DNA of 63,092 bases, counting the filler, from Lenisia limosa (lineage: Eukaryota > Protista > Breviatea): assembly GCA_001655205.1 (NCBI GenBank). It is 9 parts of 9 records of this genome, joined end to end, with 100 filler letters (N's around TTAATTAATTAA, not from the genome) between each part and the next. Parts side by side here need not be neighbours in the genome. Positions count along the whole stretch, not along the records: positions 19,736 to 42,244 come from LPNZ01010460.1; 8 more parts are not named here. The stretch is one strand, 5' to 3'. Shown here piece by piece: positions 3,415 through 38,700 of the stretch. How positions within the stretch are numbered: the stretch's first letter is position 1; the number at the start of each line of letters is the position of its first letter. The translations under genes and the position numbers were made by a program. Under the pieces are notes generated by a model that worked only from the letters and a program-made list of their open reading frames with translations, did not search any database and was not told the origin of the DNA.

Positions 3415-6400
3415 ATGCGGACCCGTGTGTCTAAGATTTTGTGGGGTCCAGAGTGGTTTCTACCTCTTTACCTCTGCCTCTGCCCACCATGTGCCCACTG
3501 CCACAGCCTCTTTTGTTTCCTCTTCAAAACTAAAAACCAAACGCAAAAAGCCGAAAGATGATGCTCCCAGAAGAAGTCTTAAAGGAAAAGCAGGAAAAAA
3601 TCCGGTCCAACACAAAGAAGCTGGTTAGAATTCTGCATTTGCTTACCTTATCCAGCTTGATCACATTTGTAAATTCGCAACTACGGCTACAATTGTCCCG
3701 TTGAAGCACTTCTACCACTCGGGAAATGGGCTCTTCTCATCAGGTTGAAATGGAAACACTGTTTTCTCAAAATACCTTTTGTTACAAACTTTCAAGCCGA
3801 ACAAAATCTTGATTGATTACTATTTAGGACTTTACCACAATGCTCTTATGGGAATGTCGATGGCTGAAAGCGGTGACGCCTCACTGAAAGAAGGTATTAA
3901 TATTTCAAATATTTGATGAAAGATTATATCATATTTGATACATTTGTATAGTATATTATCTGTCGGTCTTTTTCCTTGGGATATCACATACGAAATCGTT
4001 TAAGCCTTCCCATGGTCACTGTAGTCAGTTCATAAAGACCAATATCCGTGTCAGGACTTATCGCGGACAGTGCATAAATGAAATTGGAAAATCAAAAAAA
4101 GAAGAACTTGAAAATAGCCATCCACGCACTCACTCCATGATAAGAGATACTGTTATCGGAGACATTGATTCCAGTAAAAGATTTTGTGGAAATGAAATAT
4201 GAGTGTGATAATTTGCTGCTGTTATTATTTATTTCCATAGATTTCAAATCTATATTATTTTTCTTGCCTCCCCCCCCAACCTTTCATAAAGAAGGGCACA
4301 AACAACTCGTCTCTCTTCGACCGTTCCGCTCTATGCGGTTAGTAAGGTGAATAAATAACAAAAAAACAGAGTTTTGTTTAACGGGGAGGCAAATTACAAA
4401 AAAAAAAGAGTTTCTTATAGTATTATGTGCGGGGGAGGGAAAAAAGGGAAACTGAAAACTTCATTTTGAAGGTAACGGAAGCAGTAAAATTTTAAGTTGA
4501 GTTTTTTTTTTGTTGATTTCATAAATGATCCCCCCCACCCCCCTCACATTTTTATTATGTTCATGCGCATGTTATTTTTTGACAGAATTTTTAACCTGTT
4601 AAGATGCTGAGACAATGGTAGAGACCTTTGAATATCTTGGCAAGAAGGTGGGGTTGTTTGACATCTAAGGGGTTCTTCGGTTCGAAAAAAGATGAGATAT
4701 TTATAATAATAATTTAACAAGATATTTGTATATTGAGCAACTTCAATCAACATCTCTTATTTGCGGACGGCTTCAGTCAGATACAACCTTGTTTTTATCT
4801 GTTTTATTTATATATCATCTGTGGAGAATTTACATGCCGTTGGGAATTTCAAATTATGGATTTACATAATAGGAAGATGGTCTCTACTGCCAGCAAATGA
4901 AGTCAAAGTTTTTTGTTGAAAATGTAAGTTTTTATAAAAACAAAGCAAAGAGTCCCATTCGCCCATTTTGAAGACCTTCATGATGCCTAGGGCTTCACTT
5001 CGGTTCTAAAAAAGACTGAATTATTTCAGATAAATCCTTGAAAACTATCGATATTTCTCCGGTTTTTTTGGAACCGAATTGAAGCCCTAATGATACTTAG
5101 GTTCAAGTTGACGACACTGAAAAGAGTCTGCTTATCGGCAACTTTGCTGTTTGTTGCCTGCTATTTAGTCTCAAGAAAAGTGGGGGGGGGGGGTACCTNN
5201 NNNNNNNNNNNNNNNNNNNNNNNNNNNNNNNNNNNNNNNNNNNNNNACTGACATGATCATCGAAGAAATTGGCACTCTTTCCTTTCATAGTAAATATGGG
5301 CACCCTTCGCCCCAACTTCTTTGATATTCTGGTTTTGGAATAACATAATAAGCTCGTTGTTGAGTAAGTCTTAATAATCCACTCCATCATGTGAAAACAA
5401 ATGAACAGCTATATTGATTACTTCAGAAAATAGATATGACCACTTGAAGGCTATCATTTCTGCATTCCATGACCCTGCCACACAGACCTGGAGAAAAGAG
5501 GTATATATACATGTATATACTACCATTTTTTGGTTTTGTTTTGAATCTCTTGTATCCTTTTTTGTTCTTGTCTGTTGCACCACAACTGTTGCCTTTCCAC
5601 CAGTGATCACCCAGGCCAACTGTGTGACTAAAAGACGGCGTTGTGTTGATACTGCATTTGCTATCTTTGCGCTCAGTTGGATAAAAGACTCATTAGATGT
5701 AAGTTAACGTCAATGATAGTCTGACGTTCTCAGGAAGATGATTTAACACCAGAAGCTAATGAGATTGATAAACTCATGCTCCGTTCGACGCTGACCCTTA
5801 TCAATACCTTCAGTGCAGGCTCAGCCTCACCCAGAATGAACATTGGCCACAACGACACAACTCAATATTTATGGCAGGTTTTTGGGATTATTGTGGTTTT
5901 CTTTACTGAAGGTATGTTTATGAATTTCTAAACGCAGATTGGAATTCACTAATTTATCACAGTTGAACCATTTGGGACTCAAACCCACTAACTATTCACC
6001 TTAGGAAATGTGGTGTGGAGTTGCTTTGATGTCTTCAGCTTTTTCCCAAGATGATCAGAACAGGTCTGAAATCAACTTGAAAAAAATAATTTCATAACTT
6101 CTTTAGCTTTTAACGTATTTCTCCCTAATATACTACATATCATTACAATAGGTATATATATGTATGCTAGCTCTTGATAAATTTGTGATACGGTACTTAT
6201 TCGACAAAAAAGTCTTCAATAACAGTGACTTCAGACGTCGCGAGTGGCGGAAGTTGGCGAGTGTCATTGTCGGCAGATGCCCCAAGAAGTATGGCATTAA
6301 AGACGGAATGGTCCTGCCCCAAGTTGGCCCCATGTAAGTCCCTATTTAAGATTTATTGGGATGAGGCGAGTAAAAAGATTTCAAGGAAAGTTCAACGAAA

Positions 6401-6996: not shown

Positions 6997-9900
6997 TTAC
7001 TCAACGGACGAGGTGGGGCTGCGACTTCGTATCACTCCAGGTGATGCTGATGACCTTAACCGTCAAAGGATAGTCATTTCACATTCGGATTTTTTTAGTA
7101 ATAATATCAAATCGGGCGTATTATTGTGTGAATTGTAATCACAGTGGCTAGAAGTAACAGTTTGTTATAAACCTCAATCAAAAAATTCGCACTACAACAA
7201 GCGCTACATCTTCTTATCATATGGTGTGTTCTGTTTTTTTGTCAAGGAAAACAATGAGAACGCAAACCTCGATGAGAGAAGAGGGCTCCTTGATCTTGTT
7301 CTACTCCTGGATACAGATCTACTCCTTGATCTTGATCTTGAGACAGATTTGCTTCTCGATCTAGAGGGACTCCTTGACCTTGACATGGATCTGGATCTAC
7401 TTCTTGATCGTGATCGTCCTCGTGAAGGGAGAGGTGAGAGGGATGGCGATGGTGACTGAGGGGACTGGGATCTTGGGGCGCGTGAGGGTGACCTGTTTTG
7501 TGACCCAGGACAAACCACAAACAAAGGATTACTGCAGGCAGTCACAAAAAATCAGTCATGCAAGAGTTTCATAATGCAATTTAACATAAACCCACGGGGA
7601 GAGGGAACTTTCCGACTTCATTGAGGCCTGTGACGACCTTCTTGAAGGCGGGCTGGAGCGATTCGGAGCTTCTTGAAGATAAGTCATAATGGAGGGGAGG
7701 GGGAGTCTTCTACAAGGTCTAAAACTGTAGAAAAATGAGATAGAGCCCTTCAATACATGGCAGTTTTATTACTGTAAGGCCCTCTTACGATGGCTTGACG
7801 AACGCGGCTTTCGTTTGGACATAGATTCGACTCTTGAAACGCCTTTAGCTAAAAGAATGACGAAACATATTCATAAGAACTGATAAGAAACAACTAATGC
7901 ACCATTGTTAGTTGTGTAATTAGCAAGAAACCAGGTCTTATTGGAAACAACGAGACTTCCCAGGGCCACATACCTGGTGGAATAACAGTCATGTCAATTT
8001 CTTCTTCCTGTGGTGAACTGTCGTTTGTTTCGTCATGGTCTTGTCCGTCACTATCGGATGCACTGAACGATTACGACATCCAACAGGGTTTATGAGCACT
8101 ATCAAAAACGTCAATTGCATTCAAAAAAGGATATTCAATTTTGATCTGCAGCCCATAGCTTGAAACCAAGAACCAACTCGGAAGGGGGGAGCTTAGCTCT
8201 GCGCTTTCTCCTCTTTGCAGATGGTGCGGCCTTGATTTTTGCTTCAAGGGCCTTGACAAGCCCCCTAAACAGTCAGACAAGCTCACCTAAAACAAGGTAA
8301 TGGTCTCTTTGCAATAGGTAAAAAAGGAGGTAAAGTGTGATAGCACTACTGAATAAAGAATCAAAGGGGTGGGGAGGGGGGTAAAAGCATACTGAAGTTT
8401 GGCAGTTTCGTGGTGTCTACGGCCGCACCGTGTCTGTAAATATGAATGACAACGTAGATATTGGAAGGTAAATGATTGGGTGGATTAATTTTATACTATA
8501 ATTCAATCTCTTATAAGCGTGATGGCTTCGGCCAGATTCAACCTTGTTTTATTTCTCATCTCTATCTGGTGTATCATATGGACTAAGCCAAAGGCTTCTC
8601 GTGTTCTACATCTTTTCATTTTCCATGACTCCCAAACCCACTTTGTAGATGGTCAACAGATTTGAGAACACCAAAAGGGCCGGCTACATGGTATGAGCTA
8701 CTGTACCAACAGGCTCTATTCTATTCCAACTATGAATCAAAAAAACGCACCCGGATTTCAGATTCATATGCTCTAAGACGACCAACATTGTCAAACAAAA
8801 GGGGAAAATTCACAGGACTACCTCATGCTGATCAATTGACGCGTGTACTGTGCCCTGAAGCTTCAAACAGGGTACTGCCTCCATTGTAGGGCCCAATGCA
8901 TCCCTAAATGGGTCAATTATAGGTCTAACTGCCAAAGCAAATCAACATTTGTGAAAAAATTCTAAATACCCTTTGAAGATTTTTAGAAGAAGAAAAACAA
9001 GGTTGTACCTGGCCGAAGCCGTCTACACCATCACGCTTATCAGTGATATTAGATTATACCCATCATTTGTTTGGTTTTTGGAAAACTGTAGTAGCTATAC
9101 TCACCTATACTTTCTGGCAAAGATTTTGTTCGCCTTCTTGAGGTGGAGGATCGCCTGGTATGGCCGCTTGAGTTCCAAATAGACTTTAGCCAAGTCATGA
9201 TGACAATGGGCCAAGTGAAGGGTTCCGGGTTCTAAGGGGTAATGAAGGTTAGGAGCCCCTCGTCTGTACATATGGAAGAAAATGATGTGAAATGATGTAT
9301 TTTTTTTGTTATCTGTATCAATAAGCGTAAAAATCAAGTGATGTCTTCTCCTCTCACTTGATTTTGAGAAGAACTTGACAGCTCTGAGAAGTAAGGGCCG
9401 TGCCTCCTCAGCGTCACCATTCTCTAAATAAAGCAGGCCCTTGGGAGTGAGGAGAAAGCAGGCCCTTGTGAGTGAGGAGAAAGCAGGCCCTTGTGAGTGA
9501 GGAGAAAGCAGGCCCTTGTGAGTGAGGAGAAAGCAGGCAGGAGAAAGCAAGCCTTGTGAGTGAGGAGAATGTGGTGATAGAATGTGTTTCCTTGTGAGAT
9601 ACTATCGATATATCATTTCACTTAATATAAAAAAGCACTGGGAATATGAATAGTTTTGCGTCAAAGGGCATTTAGATTCAAGATTCTCGGTTTCCTACCC
9701 CTGTTCCAACCCCTCAACTTTAATGATTTGGGTTGTTTTTGTGTGCTTCACAAATTTTCCAATTTTACCCCCCCCCCCNNNNNNNNNNNNNNNNNNNNNN
9801 NNNNNNNNNNNNNNNNNNNNNNNNNNNNNNNNNNNNNNNNNNNNNNNNNNNNNNNNNNNNNNNNNNNNNNNNNNNNNNNNNNNNNNNNNNNNNNNNNNNN

Positions 9901-27087: not shown

Positions 27088-29901
27088 ATGGAGGCGTTCC
27101 TACGAGTCATCTTACTATGCATTCTACTTGCTGGACTTGCTCATAGTGAAAACATGTAGGAAGAAGGAGGAAAAGAAGTTGAAGCGAGAAGTTGTATTGT
27201 GCCCCCTCCCTCCCACTCCCTTTCTCTTGTCTGTCACTTCCAAACCTTTATGTAATTCCTCTTAGAATGATAAGTTCCTCAGGAGTAGAGGTGCCGAACC
27301 CAACGGTGGCGAATTCCCCGACAACAAAGGAATATGTAGATAACCTTGTTGATAGTTTGAAGGTGAGTAATCCTATTTGTTTGAGCAAATATCCCATTTT
27401 CTCCCTTTTTAATCGTCAACAAAGGAAGATATGGTTTATTTTACTAAATTGGGATTTTTCATTTTGCTAACTCGCTAATAGGTTCAGGGAGATGAAAACT
27501 TTTCAAAGGATAGCAGTTTATCCTCCTCTATAAAAAATATGATGGCGAAGTCTAAGCTTTATCATTATGAATATTCGCATCATTGACTACCAGAAAGGGC
27601 AAATATTTTACCGGGTGTTCTTATCTTGTTTAGACTGAATTTACTCTTGACCTGTTGAACAAAGTTCAAATGCTTGAAGAAGAAATTGAACGGGTTTGCT
27701 GAGTTATATCTTTTAATAATATAACTAAAGTTGCATTTTCGTTTGACTTCTCATTGTAGTAGTTTCAAGGTTTTATCGGTTTAATTAATTGATGCTGATG
27801 TTGATGTTGGACACACACAAACATATGATATAGTATAGACTGACCGCGATAAGATCTGGCACGGACATTGAGCTTTTTCTTTTGGCAATCGTGTCAGAAC
27901 TTATCGCGGTCACCGTAAAATAGTATATATAAAGATGTAACGTTTTAGGTTAAGTGTCATCGCACAATTTACTCATGTGGCGAAATCGACAAACAATGTT
28001 GGATGGATATGGAAATGCCTATTTCTTCAAAATGGAAGTTTGGCTATTCATCCCCCAGGTGCTTCCGGTTTATACAATGTCACCACCACGGATGGTTCTG
28101 AGATTTTTGAAGTCTACTGCGATATGGACTCTGAAAATGGACCATGGATGATGGTCATGGCCTATTCAAATGTAAGGAATGGAGGGGAATAATGACGCAG
28201 CTTTATAGTATCATTTTCACGTAGTTCTTCACTTCGGTTCGAAAAAGACTGAATTTCTCGATAAATCCTCGAAAAATCCTCGAAAACTATCGATATGTTC
28301 GCGGTTTTTTGTTCGAACCGAAGTGAAGCCCTAGATGCACGTGTTCATTTGAGCACAGCACGTTAGTGCCTTCACTAAAACATAAACTTGGCTATGCCAA
28401 GTTGTATTTCTCATCTCGATATAAACAAGATTCGATTCACTCCGTAGCCCGGCCTAGATGAATTATACGTTGAGCTTCCGGGCTTCCCTAGCTTCACTAA
28501 TCGCACCATGGGTTTGTGGATAGTCCATGGCTTTCTTTATATTATTTCCCGTTTTCACAAAGATCCTGTGTGGTCCTTCTCTTTAAATGTCATTTCGTCA
28601 CACCTTCAGGATCCTCATCTTTTGGCCAGTCAGACTGGGGTCAGGCGACAACAGCCAACATTGCCAAATTTTCGCCATCATCCGTGCGTTTCTTCTGCCA
28701 AACATCAAATGTCAATCGCATCATTCATTTCATGTGGGTACATGGTGTATCACTACGCATCGATTTCACTTTGGTTCGAAAAGTCCCGTAAATTATCGAT
28801 AGTTTTCGAGGATTTGTCGAGCAATTCAGCCTTTTTTTGAACCCAAGATTCATTATGTGCTTCACTACTCCGAATCTCTATGACCCTAGTTTCAATAGAG
28901 ACTTTACTGCAAACTAACTTCGGATCGGTGTGGTTTTAACGCTTGCTTCCCTACGGTCCGAAAAAACATTGTCAATCTCGATATTTTGTGGAGGATGTAT
29001 CGAGACATTTACTCTTTCGGGACCGCAGGAAATGACACGCACAAGGTGTAACTTGATTTTTTGCAGTAAAGTCTCTATTAAAACTAGGATCATAAAGGTC
29101 TTGGGGGGAAACCTAAGGAAGGGAACAAAACGCATACTTCTTTTTATGCAATATAGGACCTCAGACAGCGCAATCATGAACTATCTGTTTAATGGTGCGG
29201 CCTCCTTCCCATCAACGTTTCCGGTTTGTAGCAATTTGAATTCTGTCTCAGAGCACATCAATAAGAAGACATTATCAATCCAATCATTCCATGAATGGAA
29301 TACCCCCCTCCAACCCTCGTGTAGAGTTGATTTGGGCTTTTTTGTTCCCATACATTTTCCATTTCACCTGGAATTTCAGATTATTCGGTTAGTGATTAGT
29401 ACCTTTACGCCAATATTCTTCATCAAAATTTCCTTCGTTTTACACCCTCCACCAATGCCAACACACATGAACTAATCATGCAGTCAACCTTTGTAGCAAT
29501 GGCTGGGCATTCTGGCTATCTTCCTGCCAGCTCCGTCGCCACCACCGTCAGGGTTGAAAGGCTAAATAGCCACCCGTTCTATGTCGGAGGAACATACCAT
29601 TGGAATGCAGGGTTCGGAGACCCAGCAAGGTGGGCACAGTGACTACAATAAGTTCCTCTATGATTAAAAAAAGAATATATTTCTCGATAAATCCTCGAAA
29701 ACTATCGATATTTTACCAGTATTCGAACAGAAGTGAAGTCCTATCTATGATATTTGTATTTCTTATCTCATTTGCATCATCGATATGCAAATTGAGTTCC
29801 AGTATCAAAATGGATTTAATCGCCGCAGATGGGAATGTGATGACTACGTAGTTGCTGATGGTTACAATGCAAACACCCAGCATTACGTCTGGGTTAAGTA
29901 A
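27088..29901 (+). CDS. Secreted protein with short coiled coil and fibrinogen-like (YCDM..GxW) domain
   Basis: Signal MEAFLRVILLCILLAGLAHS; LDLLNKVQMLEEEIER; SGLYNVTTTDGSEIFEVYCDMDSENGPWMMVMAYSN; RIIHF|MTSDSAIMNYLFNG; GHSGYLP...HPFYVGGTYHWNAGFGDPAR|WECDDYVVADGYNANTQHYVWVK* (TAA 29899-29901). Confidence 0.75.
28222..28333. mobile_element. MITE family A copy
   Basis: cttcacttcggttcgaaaaagactgaatt...ttcgaaccgaagtgaagccc-ta, in a fibrinogen-like gene intron. Confidence 0.85.
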
Positions 29902-30573: not shown

Positions 30574-30637
30574 TTATTGTCTTTAACAGTCTTTTTGCTT
30601 ACTTCATTCACAACCTTCCGTAACGCCTTTCCCTCCA

Positions 30638-33600
30638 ATGTTTACCCTCGGATCCACCCTTCCGCGATTACTGCTGTCAAGAGCAGCATCAAGATTCGCA
30701 AGCTGTTCACCCCTCTCCGCCCACTCCAATCGCCCCATCTGTTATTTCAATAGGTGCGTGTTTTACTTTTCAGTATCAAATGAAGGTTTCTTATTTTTCC
30801 AGCCCTTTGAGACAATACTCTGCCCCACAGGCTCAATTGAATAACATTGACAACCTTCGAGCTTCACTGGTGCTGGTGGGTGGATGAGCTTAGAGGAAAT
30901 TTTGTATAGTATATCATATTTAGTAAGGCGGGATATAACTACTACACTCAATATCGCTCTATGATGTAATATATTAAGGAGCTTTACATCACTCTCATTG
31001 CATTTGGTAACTCTGATGTGCTAAGAGTCGTTCGTTAACATTCTCAGGTGAGTTTGCATTCCATGATGCGGAGTGATATTGAAAGCTCCGGACCATCTTC
31101 AAGTGAGCCCCCTTTCTTTTTCTTCTCCAATAAAAATCAGCAATTTTGTTTTGTTTATTTTCGTCGTATGCCAATTATGTACATTCGTAATGTTCTCATT
31201 TCGTATTTCACAAAAACTTTTAACTTTTATAGCTTTCCATAATACAACCTTCACAAAAATCAAACAACATTATTTTTCTTCCTCATCTTGACATACTAGA
31301 AAGCATTCCTCGTCTTTCGTTGCTTTCATTTTGGTTTACCCTCACCTCTCACTATCAGATTCGTCGTCGTCCCCAGCCCTAAGTACCGCCTGTCTTCTCA
31401 CTGCTGCAAATGGCACTGCGGGTAGGAAGGAAACTTTTGTAATCAGAGCTTCCATTAGCACTCCAAAGTGTGTTTTGATAATTCCCGAATTTTCAGCAAA
31501 GCCTAATACTGACCTAGTTGTTGATGTTACTGCCTCCATTGAATATATAACCAATCTCCCTCATTAAAACAATGGTTAACGGCGTCAGTCTGATATAACG
31601 TTTGATTATCTAATTTCTCTATTTTTACCATTTTCACTCCTCCAGTGAATATTGAACGTTCACTCAGTTCTACGAGTTATTCTTCTGATGAGGTTGCTGA
31701 CGAAATAATGCGAAAGGGGAATAACCCTTTATCAATAATCGGCTTTGGTTGGTGGGCATAATAATCAAAAGCAGATAATCAGATTACAAGTAGTTTTTTT
31801 AATTTCATCTTCGCTTCAGCGATGTTATATTCACCTTCTAGGTGTTTACGTGTACAATGAGAAGGAAGTGCGGGAAGTTTCGCAGAAGCTTCGAGAGAGG
31901 GGTTTCCAGGGATCAATCTGCTATGGAGGACCAGAGGTTTGTGAAACGTACATCACATTCAGTGTCTTATGATATTCATTGTTTAAAAACTGTTTTTCCT
32001 GTTATGTGCTGAATTCTGAAGGTTACATTAAAAACTCCCTCTAACATCTTTTAATTTCTTCAGATAACTTTCAGCGAAGAACATCTACCAACTTTGTACC
32101 CCTTCTGTGACTACTTTGTGAAAGGGTTAGCTTTTACTTCAATTCTCCATTATTCCTGAATTCCTATTGCTCATGTTTGTAATGAAAAGATGAGCCCTTC
32201 TCTCTTACGCTGTAGAGCTGGAGAACCCTTTATGAAATGGGCTTCCGAGCGAACTCTTTACCACAACGCAACTGCCGCTATGATGTGGCCAAGTAGCAAG
32301 GTGAATATGGACTTAGACTGGTGCATATGACATTCCAAAATTTCCTCATTTTGGGCTTCATTACATTTCTCTTTTTTATTTCTACCGTATTTACGACATC
32401 CTAGTCAACGGAGCTCATTTCCACCCTTCTCAAAAAGCCTTCCATGTCGTTGCCCGCGGGTACTCTCACAAGGACGTCTCCAGATGTTATTAGAGGTACG
32501 AATGAGTGTTATTATTAGGGCTTCCTCAAAGACCAGCTCTCGAAAAATCAAATCTGTTTTAGACCAAGATGCCCAAGTTATTATCAAAAGGATTTTGTCA
32601 ACGTTTTGATAAATATATGTTTTTTTTTTGGTAGAGTTTGTTTTTTGTTTACACTTTAATTTTTATTGCATTCTGTTTGTGGGATATTGACTCTCTAGCT
32701 GGTTCCAACTACCGGTTCGAAGATTCGGCTATCCTTTCTGGACACCAAACAAAGGGCTCGCATCAATACATGGAGTTCAAAAGCGGATGTCCATTTAGCT
32801 GCTCCTACTGCCAACACCACAACCAGTAAGCTAATCTTGTTTATCAAACCTAAATAAAAGCTCAAACCTAAATAAAAGCTCAATTATCTTTACTTCTATT
32901 TTAGTCAGCACTGCCGCCACTTTTTGATGTTCTTTTATTCATATAGTATAGATCATTTATTATCTCTTTTACGCAGTCATTTATCAGTATTAAAAAGAAG
33001 TTGTTTTTGGATACGTCATTGATAAATATCGAAAGTTTACATGTCATTATCAAACTAAAGTCTCACCATTTATCACTAATTTTTTTTTGAGGAAATTGAT
33101 TGACAAATTAAAGTGTCTGGAATAGGGTTCTCGTTACAATATGTTCGACTTCAAATTTGAAATAAATTATTCAATAAATTGAACGGAGCCCTAATAATAA
33201 TGCCCTCAGGGACGAAATCGTGACCTCCAAATCGTTTGAGCAATCCCGTGCCGAAATTGACTTCATCTTCTCCAACAACATCCCAAAGAGAATCAGTGTC
33301 GTGGATCCCGTGTTTAATATGTTAGTGTGGGAATGATGCTTACTTCTTATGCTCCATTGCGATTATATCATTTTTCTTCTTATCTGGGTCACTTTTGAAA
33401 TACAATCAATTTCTAAAGGTTATCAGTTCTACTGTTTGATGAAGGCATACTATTGATATACTATTGATAAAGATAAATTTATTATCATTGTATTGTATGT
33501 CTGAGTCATCCCACTTACCGAATAGGGGAAACTATATTGAAGTGTTTTCGGAAATGATTCGAAGCAAAAAAGTTAGAGAGAAATCACTCCTCGGTGTTTG

Positions 33601-35750
33601 AATGTCTAATTTTATTATACTTTTTGTTTCTGTTTCTTTATGCTCAAGTCTTTAGGCCCATGCCCCTGAGAAAACCACTGAACTAAGCCTGCAAGTGAGA
33701 CCCGAGAGAATTAAAACTGCTTTCATTGACAAGCTTCTGGAGGTGGGAACACTGCTATATCAATGCAAAAATGTTGGCGCATATCCACTTGTTATATGAT
33801 ATCATATTATATTTGCAGGTTTTATGACAGTAGCAAAGGAATAATTCGTTATTTTGACTTCCCCACACTAACAATCTTGCGTTTCATTCACACGCATAGG
33901 GAATGGCAGTTGGACTGGAACCTGTGGTTGAAATTGGCGTCCAAACCCTGGTCAAAAAGGTTGGGTTTTTTTGAATAAGAAATAATGCTGCTACTACATT
34001 AAAATAGGGAAACAAATACATAACCAGTGATAAAAAACAAATTACCATACTTTCCGCAGTTGGGAGCCTCTTCTGATGGTCGGGTTTGGATTTTTAGTCT
34101 TTGTTGACAGAAGTCAATTGGCCAAAAGGCTGGTGCAACAAGCTTATAAGATCTGATGACTAATAATTTGAAACCAACTATTTACCTTTTTTTTTCGGAA
34201 AATCATCAATTATTTTTTTTATAAAGAATATAAATTTGGCAAATATTAGTTCGTACTATGATATAAAAGACCGTTTATTTTCTGTTCCTTTGTAATGGTG
34301 TTATAAAATGTCATTGTTCAGGAAGCCCGTGAACTTGACCGATCATACCGATCTTCCAGTTTACAGAAAGGTGTGGTCCTTCTCAGCAAGGCTAAAATTC
34401 CTTTCGAGGTAAGCGTTAAATCTATCATTTTGGATATACCAGTTCATGTTAAGCGTTGTTTGAATTTAAAAAAATTATATGATATATATTTATTCACAAA
34501 GGTGTCTCTGATGTACGGCTTACCTCATCAAACAGTGGACTCCTTCAGGGAAACAATTGAGGAGGTTAAATCTTGGAAGTAGGAAGAAATAACTATAATA
34601 TTATCTGATATAATATATTATATATTCTACTATGGTATATTAGTATATATTAACAATCAATATATCATATTTCATATATCATGTATGTCTACGTGATGAT
34701 AGGGGAGCTGAAATGTCATATAGATATTGATATACTACTTGATATCATATTAGTATAGATACTATTACTATTCTAAATTACGTTACTTTTTTATTTTACA
34801 TGCTCTACACATTATGGGCTCTAACCGTTTAGCCCGAAAAAAGTTCTTGCTTTTCCGCTCATGCTTACCAGAGGTTCTGAGCTATACAAGCGAAAACAGG
34901 AGGTGGGAGGTCCATTCGCAGACGTCCTCTTTACCAGTGTTATTTAGCTCAGATATGAGAACTTAATATCATACGATTGAGAATGTGGATAGTTAGCATA
35001 ATTATTCCAGTAGCGATTGTTTGACTATTTAGCTTCAGCTCTTTGATGAAGTAGACGTGGTTCACGAGAGCAAAGCTAATACTGGTAGGTTTCCCGTTTT
35101 GGGTTATTTTTGTTGGTATTATTGTTATTGGGGGATTTTACCATTGACTCTGACGCCACTACTTTATTTTCGGGATTAGCCCTCCCCCGTTACTGCAGAA
35201 GCTTGGTTCGTGCTTTGTTCGTTTTTGTTTTCAACCCTCTTGTGTTGCAAGACAATAGAGATTTTGGCTTTTTTTTTTTTTTTNNNNNNNNNNNNNNNNN
35301 NNNNNNNNNNNNNNNNNNNNNNNNNNNNNNNNNNNNNNNNNNNNNNNNNNNNNCATGTCAGGAATTGCTCATGTCACTTCAAGCCCTTCGTTCACCAGGT
35401 AGGATGATACGTTGGTCGTTTCACGGTGAGATGTATGAGACTAGTTTCTAGCTTCTCCATCCAATGTGGCAAGCAAGCTGGTGTCCCCCCCCCCCCCAAN
35501 NNNNNNNNNNNNNNNNNNNNNNNNNNNNNNNNNNNNNNNNNNNNNNNNNNNNNNNNNNNNNNNNNNNNNNNNTTGCCTTGGGTCTCTTATCGTGGACCCC
35601 TGTGGGATAGGTATTTAATCGTTTATTTCAGGCTAGTTTATTTAATAATGTATTTAATAGATTAAAAAAATGAGAAATAAAAAAGGTAAGCCGTCCACAC
35701 CATTTAGTCCCCAGAAGATTATTGTGGGAGCTCAATATGAACCAACTCTA
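30638..35750 (+). CDS. Cobalamin(B12)-binding radical SAM enzyme (class B), predicted mitochondrial presequence, at least 17 exons
   Basis: Phase-consistent GT-AG exons. N-terminus MFTLGSTLPRLLLSRAASRFASCSPLSAHSNRPICYFNSPLRQYSA. B12-binding Rossmann motifs SPALSTACL, IIGFGVYVYN, ICYGGPE, CDYFVKGAGE. Radical SAM MEFKSGCPFSCSYC (CxxxCxxC at 32788-32811), VVDPVFN, LQVRPE, EIGVQTL, SLMYGLPHQT, FPLMLTRGSEL. The 3' end past about 35400 is approximate. Confidence 0.88.
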
Positions 35751-35781
35751 GAAGTGAAATCAGTCTTAATCAACATGGTGC

Positions 35782-38700
35782 CTAGAAGCCAGTAGCAATT
35801 TCAACGTGTTCAGCGGAGTAGTCGTCTTTGGTGCATGACTTTGAGCAGGTGAACACGGCAGCGGTGGAGATCTCAATTGCCGACTGCTCTCGTCTGACGT
35901 TGGGGCCCGTGGCTGAGCGGGTGAGAGAACAGGGAAAAGAGAATAGCTAGAGCTTTCTGATTTCTAATGAATAAGTATATTACATTACAATAATAAGAAA
36001 GGGTGAAAGAGGGGGGGGGGGGGNNNNNNNNNNNNNNNNNNNNNNNNNNNNNNNNNNNNNNNNNNNNNNNNNNNNNNNNNNNNNNNNNNNNNNNNNNNNN
36101 NNNNNNNNNNNNNNNNNNNNNNNNNNNNNNNNNNNNNNNNNNNNNNNNNNNNNNNAAAAAAAACCACGGCTATCCTAACATAAAACGAATAATTTGGTAA
36201 GTATACTGTATTGCAATGAGAAATAAAAAATAAGGTTGTGTCTGGCCGAAGCCGTCCACACCATCATGCTGATAGAGATATTGGATTATCGTTTTATATT
36301 AATTCACCCAATCATTTGCAATACAACTCTGTGCACACAGCTTTCTGCGTGCCTCCCCAGAAGCATAGTCATTACTACTATTCCCTGATGTAAAATCTTT
36401 TATAACAGAATCGAAATAACACAAGTCACGCTCTGATATAGTTCTTTTTCACTGCGGCGCATCGACTTGGGATACCCATGCATTATTTGGGAATCCATAA
36501 ATGTCTTCGAATTTTCATAAAATTTCATGGAATTCCCAAGTAAAATATGGGAATTCCAACGTTTGATAAGAATCCCAAGTCGATGCGCCATAGCGTTGTC
36601 GATTTCTTAAACCCGCTTTAATCTCCACTTACCCGAGCCCAGAACCGGGATGATCGGGGAGCAGAGCTGGAACTCAAATAGGCGGGGGGCGCCACAGTTG
36701 GCGCAACAGCCGCTTTCTGGCACGTCCTTTTCGGGCCAAAGAAGTCTGCCTCCAATATGGTCATATCGGAGTACCTGTCGCGGAGTAAAATTGGAAAACT
36801 TATGAAAGAAAAAAACCCGAAGTCAACTCGATTGTGATCAATACAAAAACGTGTGATTGCCAGTATAACAAACGATTACACTTCTGTTAGAAGAAGTTAG
36901 CTATAACACCAATATTAGGAGTAATATTTTCTATTTGTTTAGGCTCTGTGAAGCCCGCATTACAAACACCCTTACTGAATCGTTGTTGTGAATTATTGTG
37001 TTTTATGTAGAGTGCACTTTTTTCCGAAAGGCTGCTAAAAGCTACAGTTTTCTCGATATTTATCAAGAATTCAGTCTTTTTTGGAACCGGAAGTGAAGCC
37101 CTAGTATTAAGCAATCACACAAAGGGATAAAACAGCAATATGTAATATTTTATCTTCGGAGGCTCATTGTATACGTCAAATATACTTTTTGGATCTGTGT
37201 AGTAAATCAAGCAATCAATCTCACAAACTTGCTCGGGGTTCTCCTTTATTCTCTGAATGAAGATGGCCATTGAGTCGGTATCAGCCTCATATTGCTCAGC
37301 ACCCCATTTCTGGGTGGTTAGTGATAGAAATAGACCTCACATCGGCCCGAAAAAGATTTGTACACTACCGTTACACATCGAAAGCCTTAGGTGAAAAGAA
37401 TCACAGAGACAATTCACCCAATAGATAATAACAATATTGATAACATAGTAATGAACCTGAGCCCCAAAATAGAAAAGTTATCATCAGTCATTTATTGGGA
37501 TGAAGGAGAAGCCTTGAACTTACCTCTGAATTGTCTTCAACACCTTTGGGGATTTCCTCTTTCTTTGCCTTCTTTTTCTGAGTTGTTAAATAGTATGATG
37601 AGGTCAGAATGATCAGGCGGTAGCTTCCTTACGGTCCGAAAAGAACGGCAAAATATCGTTAGTTAACGAGTATTTATCGAGAAAAAATCAGTCTTTTGGG
37701 GACCATAGAGAAGCTAGCGGTAACCTTTTAATGGATTCTCACCAGAAATTGCATCAAAATACAATGACAAGGAGCCAACCGTTTCGCGGTGTATTCTTTC
37801 CTCATCAACCTCAACGTAGTAACCCGGGAATGTTCCAGCTTTGGGCCTCAGCATTTTGTCCCTTGAACGTGAAATCAGAGCTTTGAACACTACCACTATT
37901 GGGCAAAAGATCGGTAAACTATCCAAATATATCGAGGATCTATCAAGAAATTCAGTCTTTTTTTGAACCGAAGTGAATATGTTATGTATGTTAATTTTGT
38001 CCCTTGAACGTGAAATTTCAGACCTTTGGAGAAACAAAAAAACACTACTACTTGTTAATATGTTCGTTTTCTCCCCACTCTCACCTAATAGGGTCATCTC
38101 TAAACGTTTCTTTGGGACCCTTCTTGCTGTTGCTCTTCTTCTTTGGAGCCTAAAAATTGTGAGAAGTTGTCTCTGTTCAGTATACCATTTGGGGAAATAA
38201 TAATATTATACCCTAACACGAGATGGGATGACACCCAAATTCTGTTACAATTCAAAAGATGAAATGTTATCGTTGAAGTATAAGCTGATATTGTATGACA
38301 TTCTATTTCATGCTCATTACCTTCTTTTCCTTGACAGGCTCTGATGTCTCCTCGTTCTTCTCCTTCTCCTTTGAAGCTTGGACCGCCCTTTCCTTGGCCT
38401 AAATCTTGAGTGAGTGATGGTAATGTGACATAATACATAGTATATGATATGATACCAATTGTTGAGTATATGGTGATTTATGCAGTGATGTTATGTATTG
38501 CGCAACTCTGTTTTATTATAAAAGAATGAAAAACATAGACCGCCATCTCCACTTCCCACATTTCGTGCTCTTTCCTTCTTTTTTCGGTTCTTTTCTCTGT
38601 TCTTCTCCTGAGCTTCTGCCTCCTTTTCTAGAAAGAGTAAAATAAAACAGAGGATTTCATTTTTTTTAAAAAAAAAACTCCCACTTTGTTCGATTTCGTT

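Follow-up and report, generated by a model that had tools for sequence, protein, structure and literature searches.

The locus is a gene of 20 exons and 19 introns on the plus strand of the window (the whole stretch of 63,092 nucleotides of Lenisia limosa DNA that was analysed), and every intron begins with GT and ends with AG. In the spliced model the coding sequence is 1584 nt long and open throughout, giving a protein of 527 amino acids. It starts with the ATG at 30638, downstream of an in-frame stop at 30584, and ends with the TAG at 35608-35610 and not at 35750, where an earlier sequence-only reading of the region had placed the end. That reading counted at least 17 GT-AG exons in consistent phase; the splice sites and the phase stand, while the full count is 20. 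Every motif that it quoted was recovered, and a single frame runs through the joined exons. The features are:

30613-30637, plus strand: 5' UTR, minimum extent (first base of the RNA contig from run X1: 30613)
30638-30753, plus strand: exon 1, ATG and most of the putative mitochondrial-type presequence (aa 1-38)
30803-30875, plus strand: exon 2, RQY↓S site (aa 42-45) and Rossmann start LVLVSL (aa 61-66); the length of the RNA contig demands the donor at 30875, not 30869
31048-31102, plus strand: exon 3
31359-31421, plus strand: exon 4, Rossmann helix alpha-1
31646-31747, plus strand: exon 5 (the RNA contig piece spans 31645-31746)
31842-31936, plus strand: exon 6, FGVYVYN to CYGGPE of the B12-binding-type domain
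32064-32125, plus strand: exon 7
32216-32300, plus strand: exon 8, region of the GAGE motif
32405-32495, plus strand: exon 9, linker
32699-32825, plus strand: exon 10, radical SAM cluster motif (C278-x3-C282-x2-C285 at 32788-32811)
33210-33320, plus strand: exon 11, VVDPVFN
33526-33571, plus strand: exon 12
33656-33742, plus strand: exon 13
33900-33959, plus strand: exon 14, EIGVQT
34322-34408, plus strand: exon 15
34502-34578, plus strand: exon 16, YGLPHQT
34833-34902, plus strand: exon 17, end of the radical SAM core
35033-35084, plus strand: exon 18
35338-35398, plus strand: exon 19; start nominal, as the first 16 nt lie inside the N gap 35284-35353 (from the RNA contig letters and from the gap-free contig L173, at 8158-8218)
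35547-35610, plus strand: exon 20, with the stop TAG; start nominal, as the first 26 nt lie inside the N gap 35500-35572 (from the RNA contig and L173)
35611-35633, plus strand: 3' UTR, minimum extent (the RNA contig ends at 35633)

Transcription and splicing

The proposal of a spliced, expressed eukaryotic gene was checked against RNA-seq data. A single contig of 1632 nt from the polyA RNA run X1 (depth 34, 0 mismatches) runs collinear with the exons over 30613-35633 and matches the spliced model to the base; the spliced length predicted by the model is exactly 1632 nt. The same contig bridges both N gaps, with 16 nt between 35084 and 35354 and 25 nt between 35399 and 35573, and the reading frame continues across both. 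Instead of a missing or frameshifted transcript we thus find an intact one with an open frame.

Further, a public ENA DNA contig without gaps, L173, which comes from an independent assembly and is 34.5 kb long, agrees with the window at every base over 4,884 nt. In this contig the gap-spanning RNA letters directly follow AG acceptors inside both gaps, whose true lengths are about 45 and 58 nt. The gene is nuclear, eukaryotic and probably functional, and its mRNA is spliced and polyadenylated.

Domains of the protein and its place among radical SAM enzymes

The protein has four parts: an Arg-rich, acid-free extension of about 58 aa with the RQY↓S site, a Rossmann domain, a radical SAM core and a short tail. 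The architecture claimed from the sequence is borne out: an intact radical SAM core stands behind a Rossmann domain of the B12-binding type. The cluster motif CxxxCxxC that defines radical SAM proteins occurs once, as C278-x3-C282-x2-C285 in the context GCPFSCSYC. In agreement with the earlier description, no DxHxxG motif is found in the whole 527-aa protein. Solved class B members lack this motif and hold cobalamin without a histidine ligand; to our knowledge, cobalamin binding in class B enzymes has no sequence signature, and we know of the combination of a cobalamin domain with radical SAM almost only from bacteria and archaea.

Membership of the two domain families (PF02310 and PF04055) was scored by proxy, using profiles made from the Pfam-positive regions of bacterial relatives. 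Over aa 114-472 the protein reaches 120 bits (E 5e-39, for one sequence) with the profile of these relatives. With the profile of their PF02310-positive N-domains, the N-domain by itself (aa 115-196) reaches 37.5 bits (E 7e-14), while 300 shuffles reach a maximum of 2.1 bits, and the core scores 73 bits (E 6.5e-25) against the profile of the PF04055-positive core from 67 bacterial relatives. These profile scores show the Rossmann domain to be homologous to the Pfam B12-binding domain of the bacterial relatives, and the core to be homologous too; the first strand and helix of the Rossmann domain are placed by inspection only. When single exons are searched directly, PF02310 gives no match to pieces of 20-33 aa, which are too short, and PF04055 matches exon 10 alone weakly (E 0.41). 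Over Pfam and NCBIfam only exons 10 and 16 match, and these matches are weak and do not discriminate.

Among the sequences fetched, the best pairwise and profile matches are bacterial DUF4080-type proteins (PF02310, PF04055 and PF13311), with 22-25% identity over aa 85-472. These proteins, for which we know of no function, have the same order of Rossmann and radical SAM domains as the window protein, and they share with it the motifs F..Y.(W/Y)N, GGPE, G.GE, GCPFSCSYC, D..FN, EIGVQ and GLP. In contrast to them, the window protein is eukaryotic and intron-rich, has an N-terminal extension of 58-70 aa and a Ser-rich insert, and, unlike DUF4080-type proteins, ends 55 aa past the core. The DUF4080 domain (PF13311) is missing, the score against the C-domain profile being 0.5 bits where shuffles reach 5.0. 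Members of the DUF4080 family score 550-910 bits, compared with 120 for the window protein, which is equal to unrelated class B proteins.

With the best bacterial relative, L097, as reference for residue numbering, 26 of 41 family invariants are kept, including GGP, the cluster motif, D..FN, E.G.Q and LP. The other 15 are changed: N24, I79, E127, R189, R206, K229, R233, E261, H325, D327, Q356, G358, K361, L363 and P384. Because the DUF4080 domain is absent and these invariants differ, we class the protein, on its sequence, as a putative deep-branching class-B-type enzyme outside the DUF4080 family. As a deep, long-branch relative without the DUF4080 domain it cannot, judged by sequence comparison, be given a substrate transferred from any characterised enzyme.

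The best structural matches to a model of L097, a bacterial proxy and not the window protein itself, are the cobalamin-dependent methylases CysS (9N1B), TokK (7KDX), TsrM (6WTE/6WTF) and MgmA (9CCB), whose substrates are an antibiotic, a carbapenem, tryptophan and protein glutamine. They share the two-domain plan with the window protein, and exon 10 alone gives weak matches to 9CCB and TokK around the cluster motif. However, sequence identity to these enzymes is in the noise and the C-terminal domains are unrelated.

Two other groups share features with the window protein. HemN and HemW, the latter including RSAD1, a mitochondrial radical SAM protein of animals, have the core motifs YGLP.QT and IGVQ in common with it, and exon 16 matches HemN with E 3e-4 in NCBIfam and 0.5 in PDB. 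These proteins, however, carry the cluster motif close to the N-terminus and a HemN_C domain, and they lack an N-terminal Rossmann domain, whereas the window protein has the motif at aa 278, downstream of a B12-type domain, and only a short tail. Methylthiotransferases of the MiaB type (CDK5RAP1, CDKAL1) are likewise eukaryotic, partly mitochondrial radical SAM proteins with an N-terminal Rossmann-like domain, and MiaB ranks in the middle of the structural matches to the bacterial proxy model. These enzymes depend on three conserved N-domain cysteines for a second cluster and on a C-terminal TRAM domain; in the window protein Cys 93, 163 and 183 are off the conserved positions of the aligned relatives and there is no room for TRAM. 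In NCBIfam the MiaB match of exon 10 is weaker than its matches to B12-type families.

Relatives and origin

In a tree the window protein falls on the DUF4080-type side of the main split, on an extremely long branch (3.38 changes per column), and it is nested in no bacterial clade. The homologues fetched are all prokaryotic or viral, with at most 25% identity. None of the 120 best relatives of L097 is closer than 25% identity to the window protein, and no closer protein was found among viral proteins with the same cluster motif.

Searches with pieces of the protein gave the same picture. With phmmer, the in-frame piece formed by exon 15, the intron and exon 16 (85 aa) had 0 matches at E<=1e-3 among 1.84 billion representatives, a result that rules out only relatives more than about 50-55% identical over those residues. 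The 85-aa piece and a 64-aa piece of exon 10 also returned nothing from word-index searches, which a length filter restricts to fragments. A metagenome scan with the pattern KSGCPFSCSYCQ gave 0 matches, and six peptide patterns from exons 15-16 found no relative in metagenomes and none in viral contigs. Atlas look-ups returned only bacterial clusters or uninformative fragments. Two profile queries that combined a scaffold with the exons (A1 and A2) were dropped, since MAFFT scattered the fragments and the 281 columns kept were dominated by the scaffold. In the literature that we searched there was no paper dealing with B12-binding radical SAM enzymes of eukaryotes, nor any dealing with DUF4080.

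The distribution of relatives only suggests horizontal acquisition, and the long branch and the 19 introns are as compatible with an ancient transfer as with an old eukaryotic gene. A gene inherited vertically since early eukaryotes and lost in most lineages, and not acquired horizontally in this lineage, is a reading that we take seriously while placing it somewhat below an even chance. It agrees with the density of introns (19 within 1.6 kb, in exons with a mean length of 79 nt), with a composition that is fully host-like (47% GC in exons vs 33% in introns), and with the low identity to any sampled prokaryote or virus and the position in the tree. On the other hand, no eukaryotic homologue was found in searches with single-exon pieces.

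Cobalamin, compartment and gene neighbourhood

Taken as a whole, we consider it probable that the locus encodes a eukaryotic nuclear enzyme with class B architecture, in which the Rossmann domain precedes a TIM-barrel radical SAM core; it is predicted to use cobalamin and to be mitochondrial. In the mechanism that we propose, C278, C282 and C285 would hold a [4Fe-4S] cluster, which would reductively cleave S-adenosylmethionine to a 5'-deoxyadenosyl radical. The N-domain may hold cobalamin without a histidine ligand, by analogy with solved class B enzymes, and the cobalamin would then relay a methyl group from a second S-adenosylmethionine to an unactivated carbon of the substrate. The first 45-58 residues would be a cleavable presequence that directs the protein to the mitochondrial matrix. 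Fe-S assembly occurs in this compartment, and in animals cobalamin is delivered there.

The use of cobalamin is suggested by domain content and would be lost if the Rossmann domain had become structural or bound another ligand, so that the chemistry was a cobalamin-independent radical reaction and not methylation. The changed invariants fit such a loss, as they include the N..YIH loop after strand 1, E127, R189, R233 and H325, and so do the length of the branch and the resemblance of the core motifs YGLP.QT and IGVQ to the cobalamin-independent HemN group. However, the protein retains GGPE, G.GE and the latter half of the B12-type domain, with the score given above, and in architecture and domain order it corresponds to class B enzymes. 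We therefore find the loss of cobalamin rather unlikely, and the reading as a predicted cobalamin enzyme is the one that we follow.

The location in mitochondria is likewise a prediction. Relative to bacterial proteins the N-terminus is extended by about 60-70 aa; it has no Asp or Glu before D55 and five Arg in the first 45 aa, and a stretch at aa 11-25 is amphipathic, with a hydrophobic moment of up to 0.69 over aa 13-23. Together with a putative R-3 cleavage site, RQY↓S at aa 42-45, this upholds by heuristic criteria the presequence features that had been pointed out. A MAFFT profile alignment can be read differently: it sets RLLLS (aa 10-14) against strand 1 of the bacterial proteins and makes aa 32-87 an insertion, which leaves no presequence, and the N-terminal 58 aa would then be part of the fold, or would target the protein to another compartment or the cytosol. 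This placement demands a 56-aa insertion, though, and the invariant N and H are not conserved in it. If LVLVSL (aa 61-66) is taken as the strand instead, 21 residues separate it from helix 1, compared with 9 in bacteria, and the composition is typical of presequences, as is the R-3 site. A protein outside mitochondria thus seems to us improbable, if by no means far-fetched, and we keep the predicted mitochondrial enzyme as the working interpretation.

More tentative is the specific claim that the nuclear genome of a eukaryote encodes a mitochondrial cobalamin-dependent radical SAM methylase, which we would at present doubt more than believe. Class B radical SAM enzymes are regarded as prokaryotic chemistry, and accounts of cobalamin in eukaryotes usually come down to two or three enzymes. 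If the claim is true, a further class of eukaryotic B12 enzyme would stand beside methionine synthase, methylmalonyl-CoA mutase and class II ribonucleotide reductase, and mitochondria would have a new demand for cobalamin, with some lipid, cofactor, RNA or protein as the target. As a eukaryotic representative the locus is clean, expressed and intron-rich, and it has a putative import signal. It offers a concrete gene for asking whether eukaryotes use cobalamin in radical methylation, where in the cell they would do so and which substrate would be modified, and a case for asking whether such genes are old transfers or relics. In a holobiont animal, such a gene would also touch on how far the host relies on B12 from its symbionts.

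The upstream neighbour of the gene is a fibrinogen-C exon (Fibrinogen_C) and the downstream neighbour a PDCD2_C exon, so that the genes on both sides are, by their predicted domains, eukaryotic. Judged by these two neighbours alone, an animal host would be likelier than a protist, as the fibrinogen-C domain is largely metazoan. A bacterial contaminant or a chimeric assembly, for which the sole point is the prokaryotic distribution of the family, is refuted by the gene model, by a polyA RNA contig from which 19 spliceosomal introns are removed, by the same arrangement in L173 and by these flanking genes, and we attach practically no weight to it.

Transcript and gene model

X1 is a polyA RNA run (library labelled metatranscriptomic, polyA) of the study that also produced the DNA. 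A single contig of 1632 nt in it lies on the radical SAM gene at depth 34 with 0 mismatches. Between 30613 and 35633 this contig follows the exons and leaves out the introns. Contaminating DNA cannot lose introns, so this contig is direct evidence for a spliced transcript. The spliced model put forward in the sequence-only reading is thereby borne out, as the contig has the predicted length: splicing 30613-35633 gives exactly 1632 nt once the donor of exon 2 is moved from 30869 to 30875. Further, all the motifs quoted in that reading are seen in the three-frame translation of 30600-35800, and the coding pieces at the GT/AG sites join into one continuous frame, in agreement with the consistent splice phase it described. 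However, the gene stops at 35610 and not at 35750.

The final model, based on the gap-free ENA contig L173, has 20 exons (46-127 nt) and 19 introns (49-384 nt), all GT..AG. The coding sequence is 1584 nt, ends with TAG at 35608-35610 and encodes 527 amino acids. The GC is 47% in exons and 33% in introns. No second copy of the gene is found in the piece.

Exon 2 ends with two in-frame GT donors, 30869 and 30875, 6 nt apart. Only the distal one is compatible with the length of the RNA contig; use of the proximal donor could produce a minor isoform two residues shorter. There is also a pyrimidine-rich, acceptor-like AG at 30585-30589, 49 nt 5' of the ATG, with the frame open from there onward. 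Given this site, and since the RNA contig starts at 30613, an extra upstream exon is conceivable, but it is disfavoured because the protein has a presequence-like start at M1.

Two runs of N interrupt the gene in the assembly.

Runs of N, with true gap lengths from L173
35284-35353: 70 N, true gap about 45 nt
35500-35572: 73 N, true gap about 58 nt

In the RNA contig, 16 letters separate 35084 from 35354 and 25 separate 35399 from 35573; with these included the frame is open through both gaps to the TAG. L173, traced through an exact protein match to a neighbouring ORF, is identical to the window along 4,884 nt, and in it the gap letters sit directly after AG acceptors at both gaps. Each N run conceals the end of an intron and the start of an exon (16 nt of it in the first gap, 26 nt in the second); the sequence is continuous and in frame across both. 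Homopolymer runs (T15, C13) adjoin the gaps and probably caused the assembly to break there.

L173 (also L174) is NODE_225, 34.5 kb, of the independent ENA metagenome assembly ERZ3820729, and reaches about 19 kb past the window. The prokaryote-style gene calling applied there did not pick up the radical SAM gene at all, which is why the protein is absent from protein collections.

Domain architecture and relatives

Relatives were gathered with a degenerate DNA pattern for GCPFSCSYC, giving 120 prokaryotic and 51 viral loci. In this small fetched set the top matches show 22-25% identity over residues 85-472, with a best E-value of 2e-19. Pfam assigns B12-binding, Radical_SAM and DUF4080 domains to the best bacterial matches, for which there is no NCBIfam equivalog. 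Against a profile built from the bacterial relatives, residues 114-472 score 120 bits. Taken separately, the N-domain profile gives 37.5 bits at residues 115-196 (E 7e-14; the best of 300 shuffles gives 2.1 bits) and the radical SAM core profile 73 bits, so the earlier two-domain reading, a B12-binding Rossmann domain followed by radical SAM, is right.

The DUF4080 domain belongs to the bacterial proteins, while the eukaryotic protein is without one: the DUF4080-part profile gives 0.5 bits, no better than shuffles, and the protein ends about 55 residues past the core. Membership of the DUF4080-type family was rejected, as the family profile gives 120 bits, which is what unrelated class B proteins reach, against 550-910 for members. 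Of 41 residues invariant in 58 members, 26 are kept (including GGP, the cluster motif, D..FN, E.G.Q and LP) and 15 are changed.

A quick maximum-likelihood tree gives the protein the longest branch of all (3.38). Only one split has strong support, and the protein lies on the DUF4080 side of it but outside the DUF4080 clade, where it groups, without resolution, with a viral protein and a KedN5-like protein from an archaeon; this position may be a long-branch artefact. Of the relatives of the closest bacterial protein, the best 120 come no nearer than 22-25%, nor do the fetched viral proteins.

An exhaustive search of 1.84 billion representatives, using the only two-exon in-frame piece, gave no match, nor did fragment searches with pieces of the protein, and scanning metagenomes and viral contigs for sequence patterns turned up no relative either; such searches detect only relatives above about 50% identity in one or two exons. 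No paper on B12-binding radical SAM enzymes of eukaryotes came up in a literature search. We conclude that this is a genuine and unusual gene, whose protein adds a new eukaryotic form to the class B architecture.

N-terminus and proposed chemistry

Bacterial relatives start at about residue 70. The extension before this point has no Asp or Glu in its first 54 residues, as noted earlier, and is rich in Ser, Ala and Leu, with five Arg in the first 45 residues and an amphipathic stretch at 11-25. The R-x-Y|S motif is also found, as RQY|S at 42-45, a cleavage site of the R-3 type. Taken together, the acid-free, Arg-rich, amphipathic N-terminus and RQY|S make mitochondrial import a reasonable expectation from the sequence.

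We place the first Rossmann strand at LVLVSL (61-66), which would be followed by a Ser-rich insert and by helix 1 from residue 87. MAFFT instead pairs the strand with RLLLS (10-14), but this is less likely, as it costs an insertion of 56 residues.

By family analogy, three cysteines would hold a [4Fe-4S] cluster and SAM would be cleaved to a 5'-deoxyadenosyl radical. If the Rossmann domain still binds cobalamin, a methyl from a second SAM could be passed to the substrate radical. The best structural matches to a high-confidence model of the closest bacterial protein (pLDDT 93.6) are the cobalamin-dependent methylases CysS, TokK, TsrM and MgmA; as the model is of a bacterial proxy, they inform on the neighbourhood only.

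Bacterial DUF4080-type genes repeatedly adjoin Ham1/ITPase. In some proteins the two are fused, and one cluster of such fusions has 259 members. Other neighbours are endonuclease III, an RNase T-like exonuclease and a cytidine-deaminase-like gene.

Loci behind the bacterial neighbour pattern
L097 (best-matching relative): 3621-4208
L044: 3161-3835
L012: 6409-7044
L098: 4556-5269
also P0008 and P0033

The pattern suggests that the bacterial family may act on nucleotides or nucleic acids. Carried over to the eukaryotic protein, the analogy is a weak lead, because of the 22-25% identity and the missing DUF4080 domain.

Neighbouring genes and repeats

The host is eukaryotic beyond doubt. Exons with domain matches lie on both sides of the gene.

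Flanking exons
28061-28162, + strand: Fibrinogen_C (PF00147), 25.6 bits, above the Pfam gathering score; upstream, same strand as the gene
36610-36822, - strand: PDCD2_C, 42 bits; downstream, convergent with the gene

Fibrinogen_C is a largely metazoan domain, and the flanking genes make an animal host more likely than the protist assumed in the sequence-only reading. The metatranscriptomic, polyA label of the RNA library would suit an animal holobiont; the sequence occurs in a single study. A separate polyA RNA contig of 1697 nt touches 35782-35918, beside the PDCD2_C exon, and is probably the 3' end of that gene.

Two dispersed repeats also occur here.

Repeat copies, both orientations
Core TTATAAGCGTGATGGTGTGGACGGCTTCGGCCAGA, about 60-90 nt per copy: 19915, 20527, 22081, 24719, 25590, 36213, 39430
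Core CTCGATAAATCCTCGAAAACTATCGATAT: 20938, 21263, 28257, 28779, 29674, 32992, 37639, 37905, 40807

The first is MITE- or SINE-like, has no Rfam or tRNA match and is extremely abundant: at 36200-36400 the summed contig depth of the DNA run climbs from a background of about 35 to about 120,000. The copy of the second at 32992 lies in intron 10 of the radical SAM gene, and the repeat probably explains why DNA depth reaches about 1,200 over 33037-33235 in that intron.
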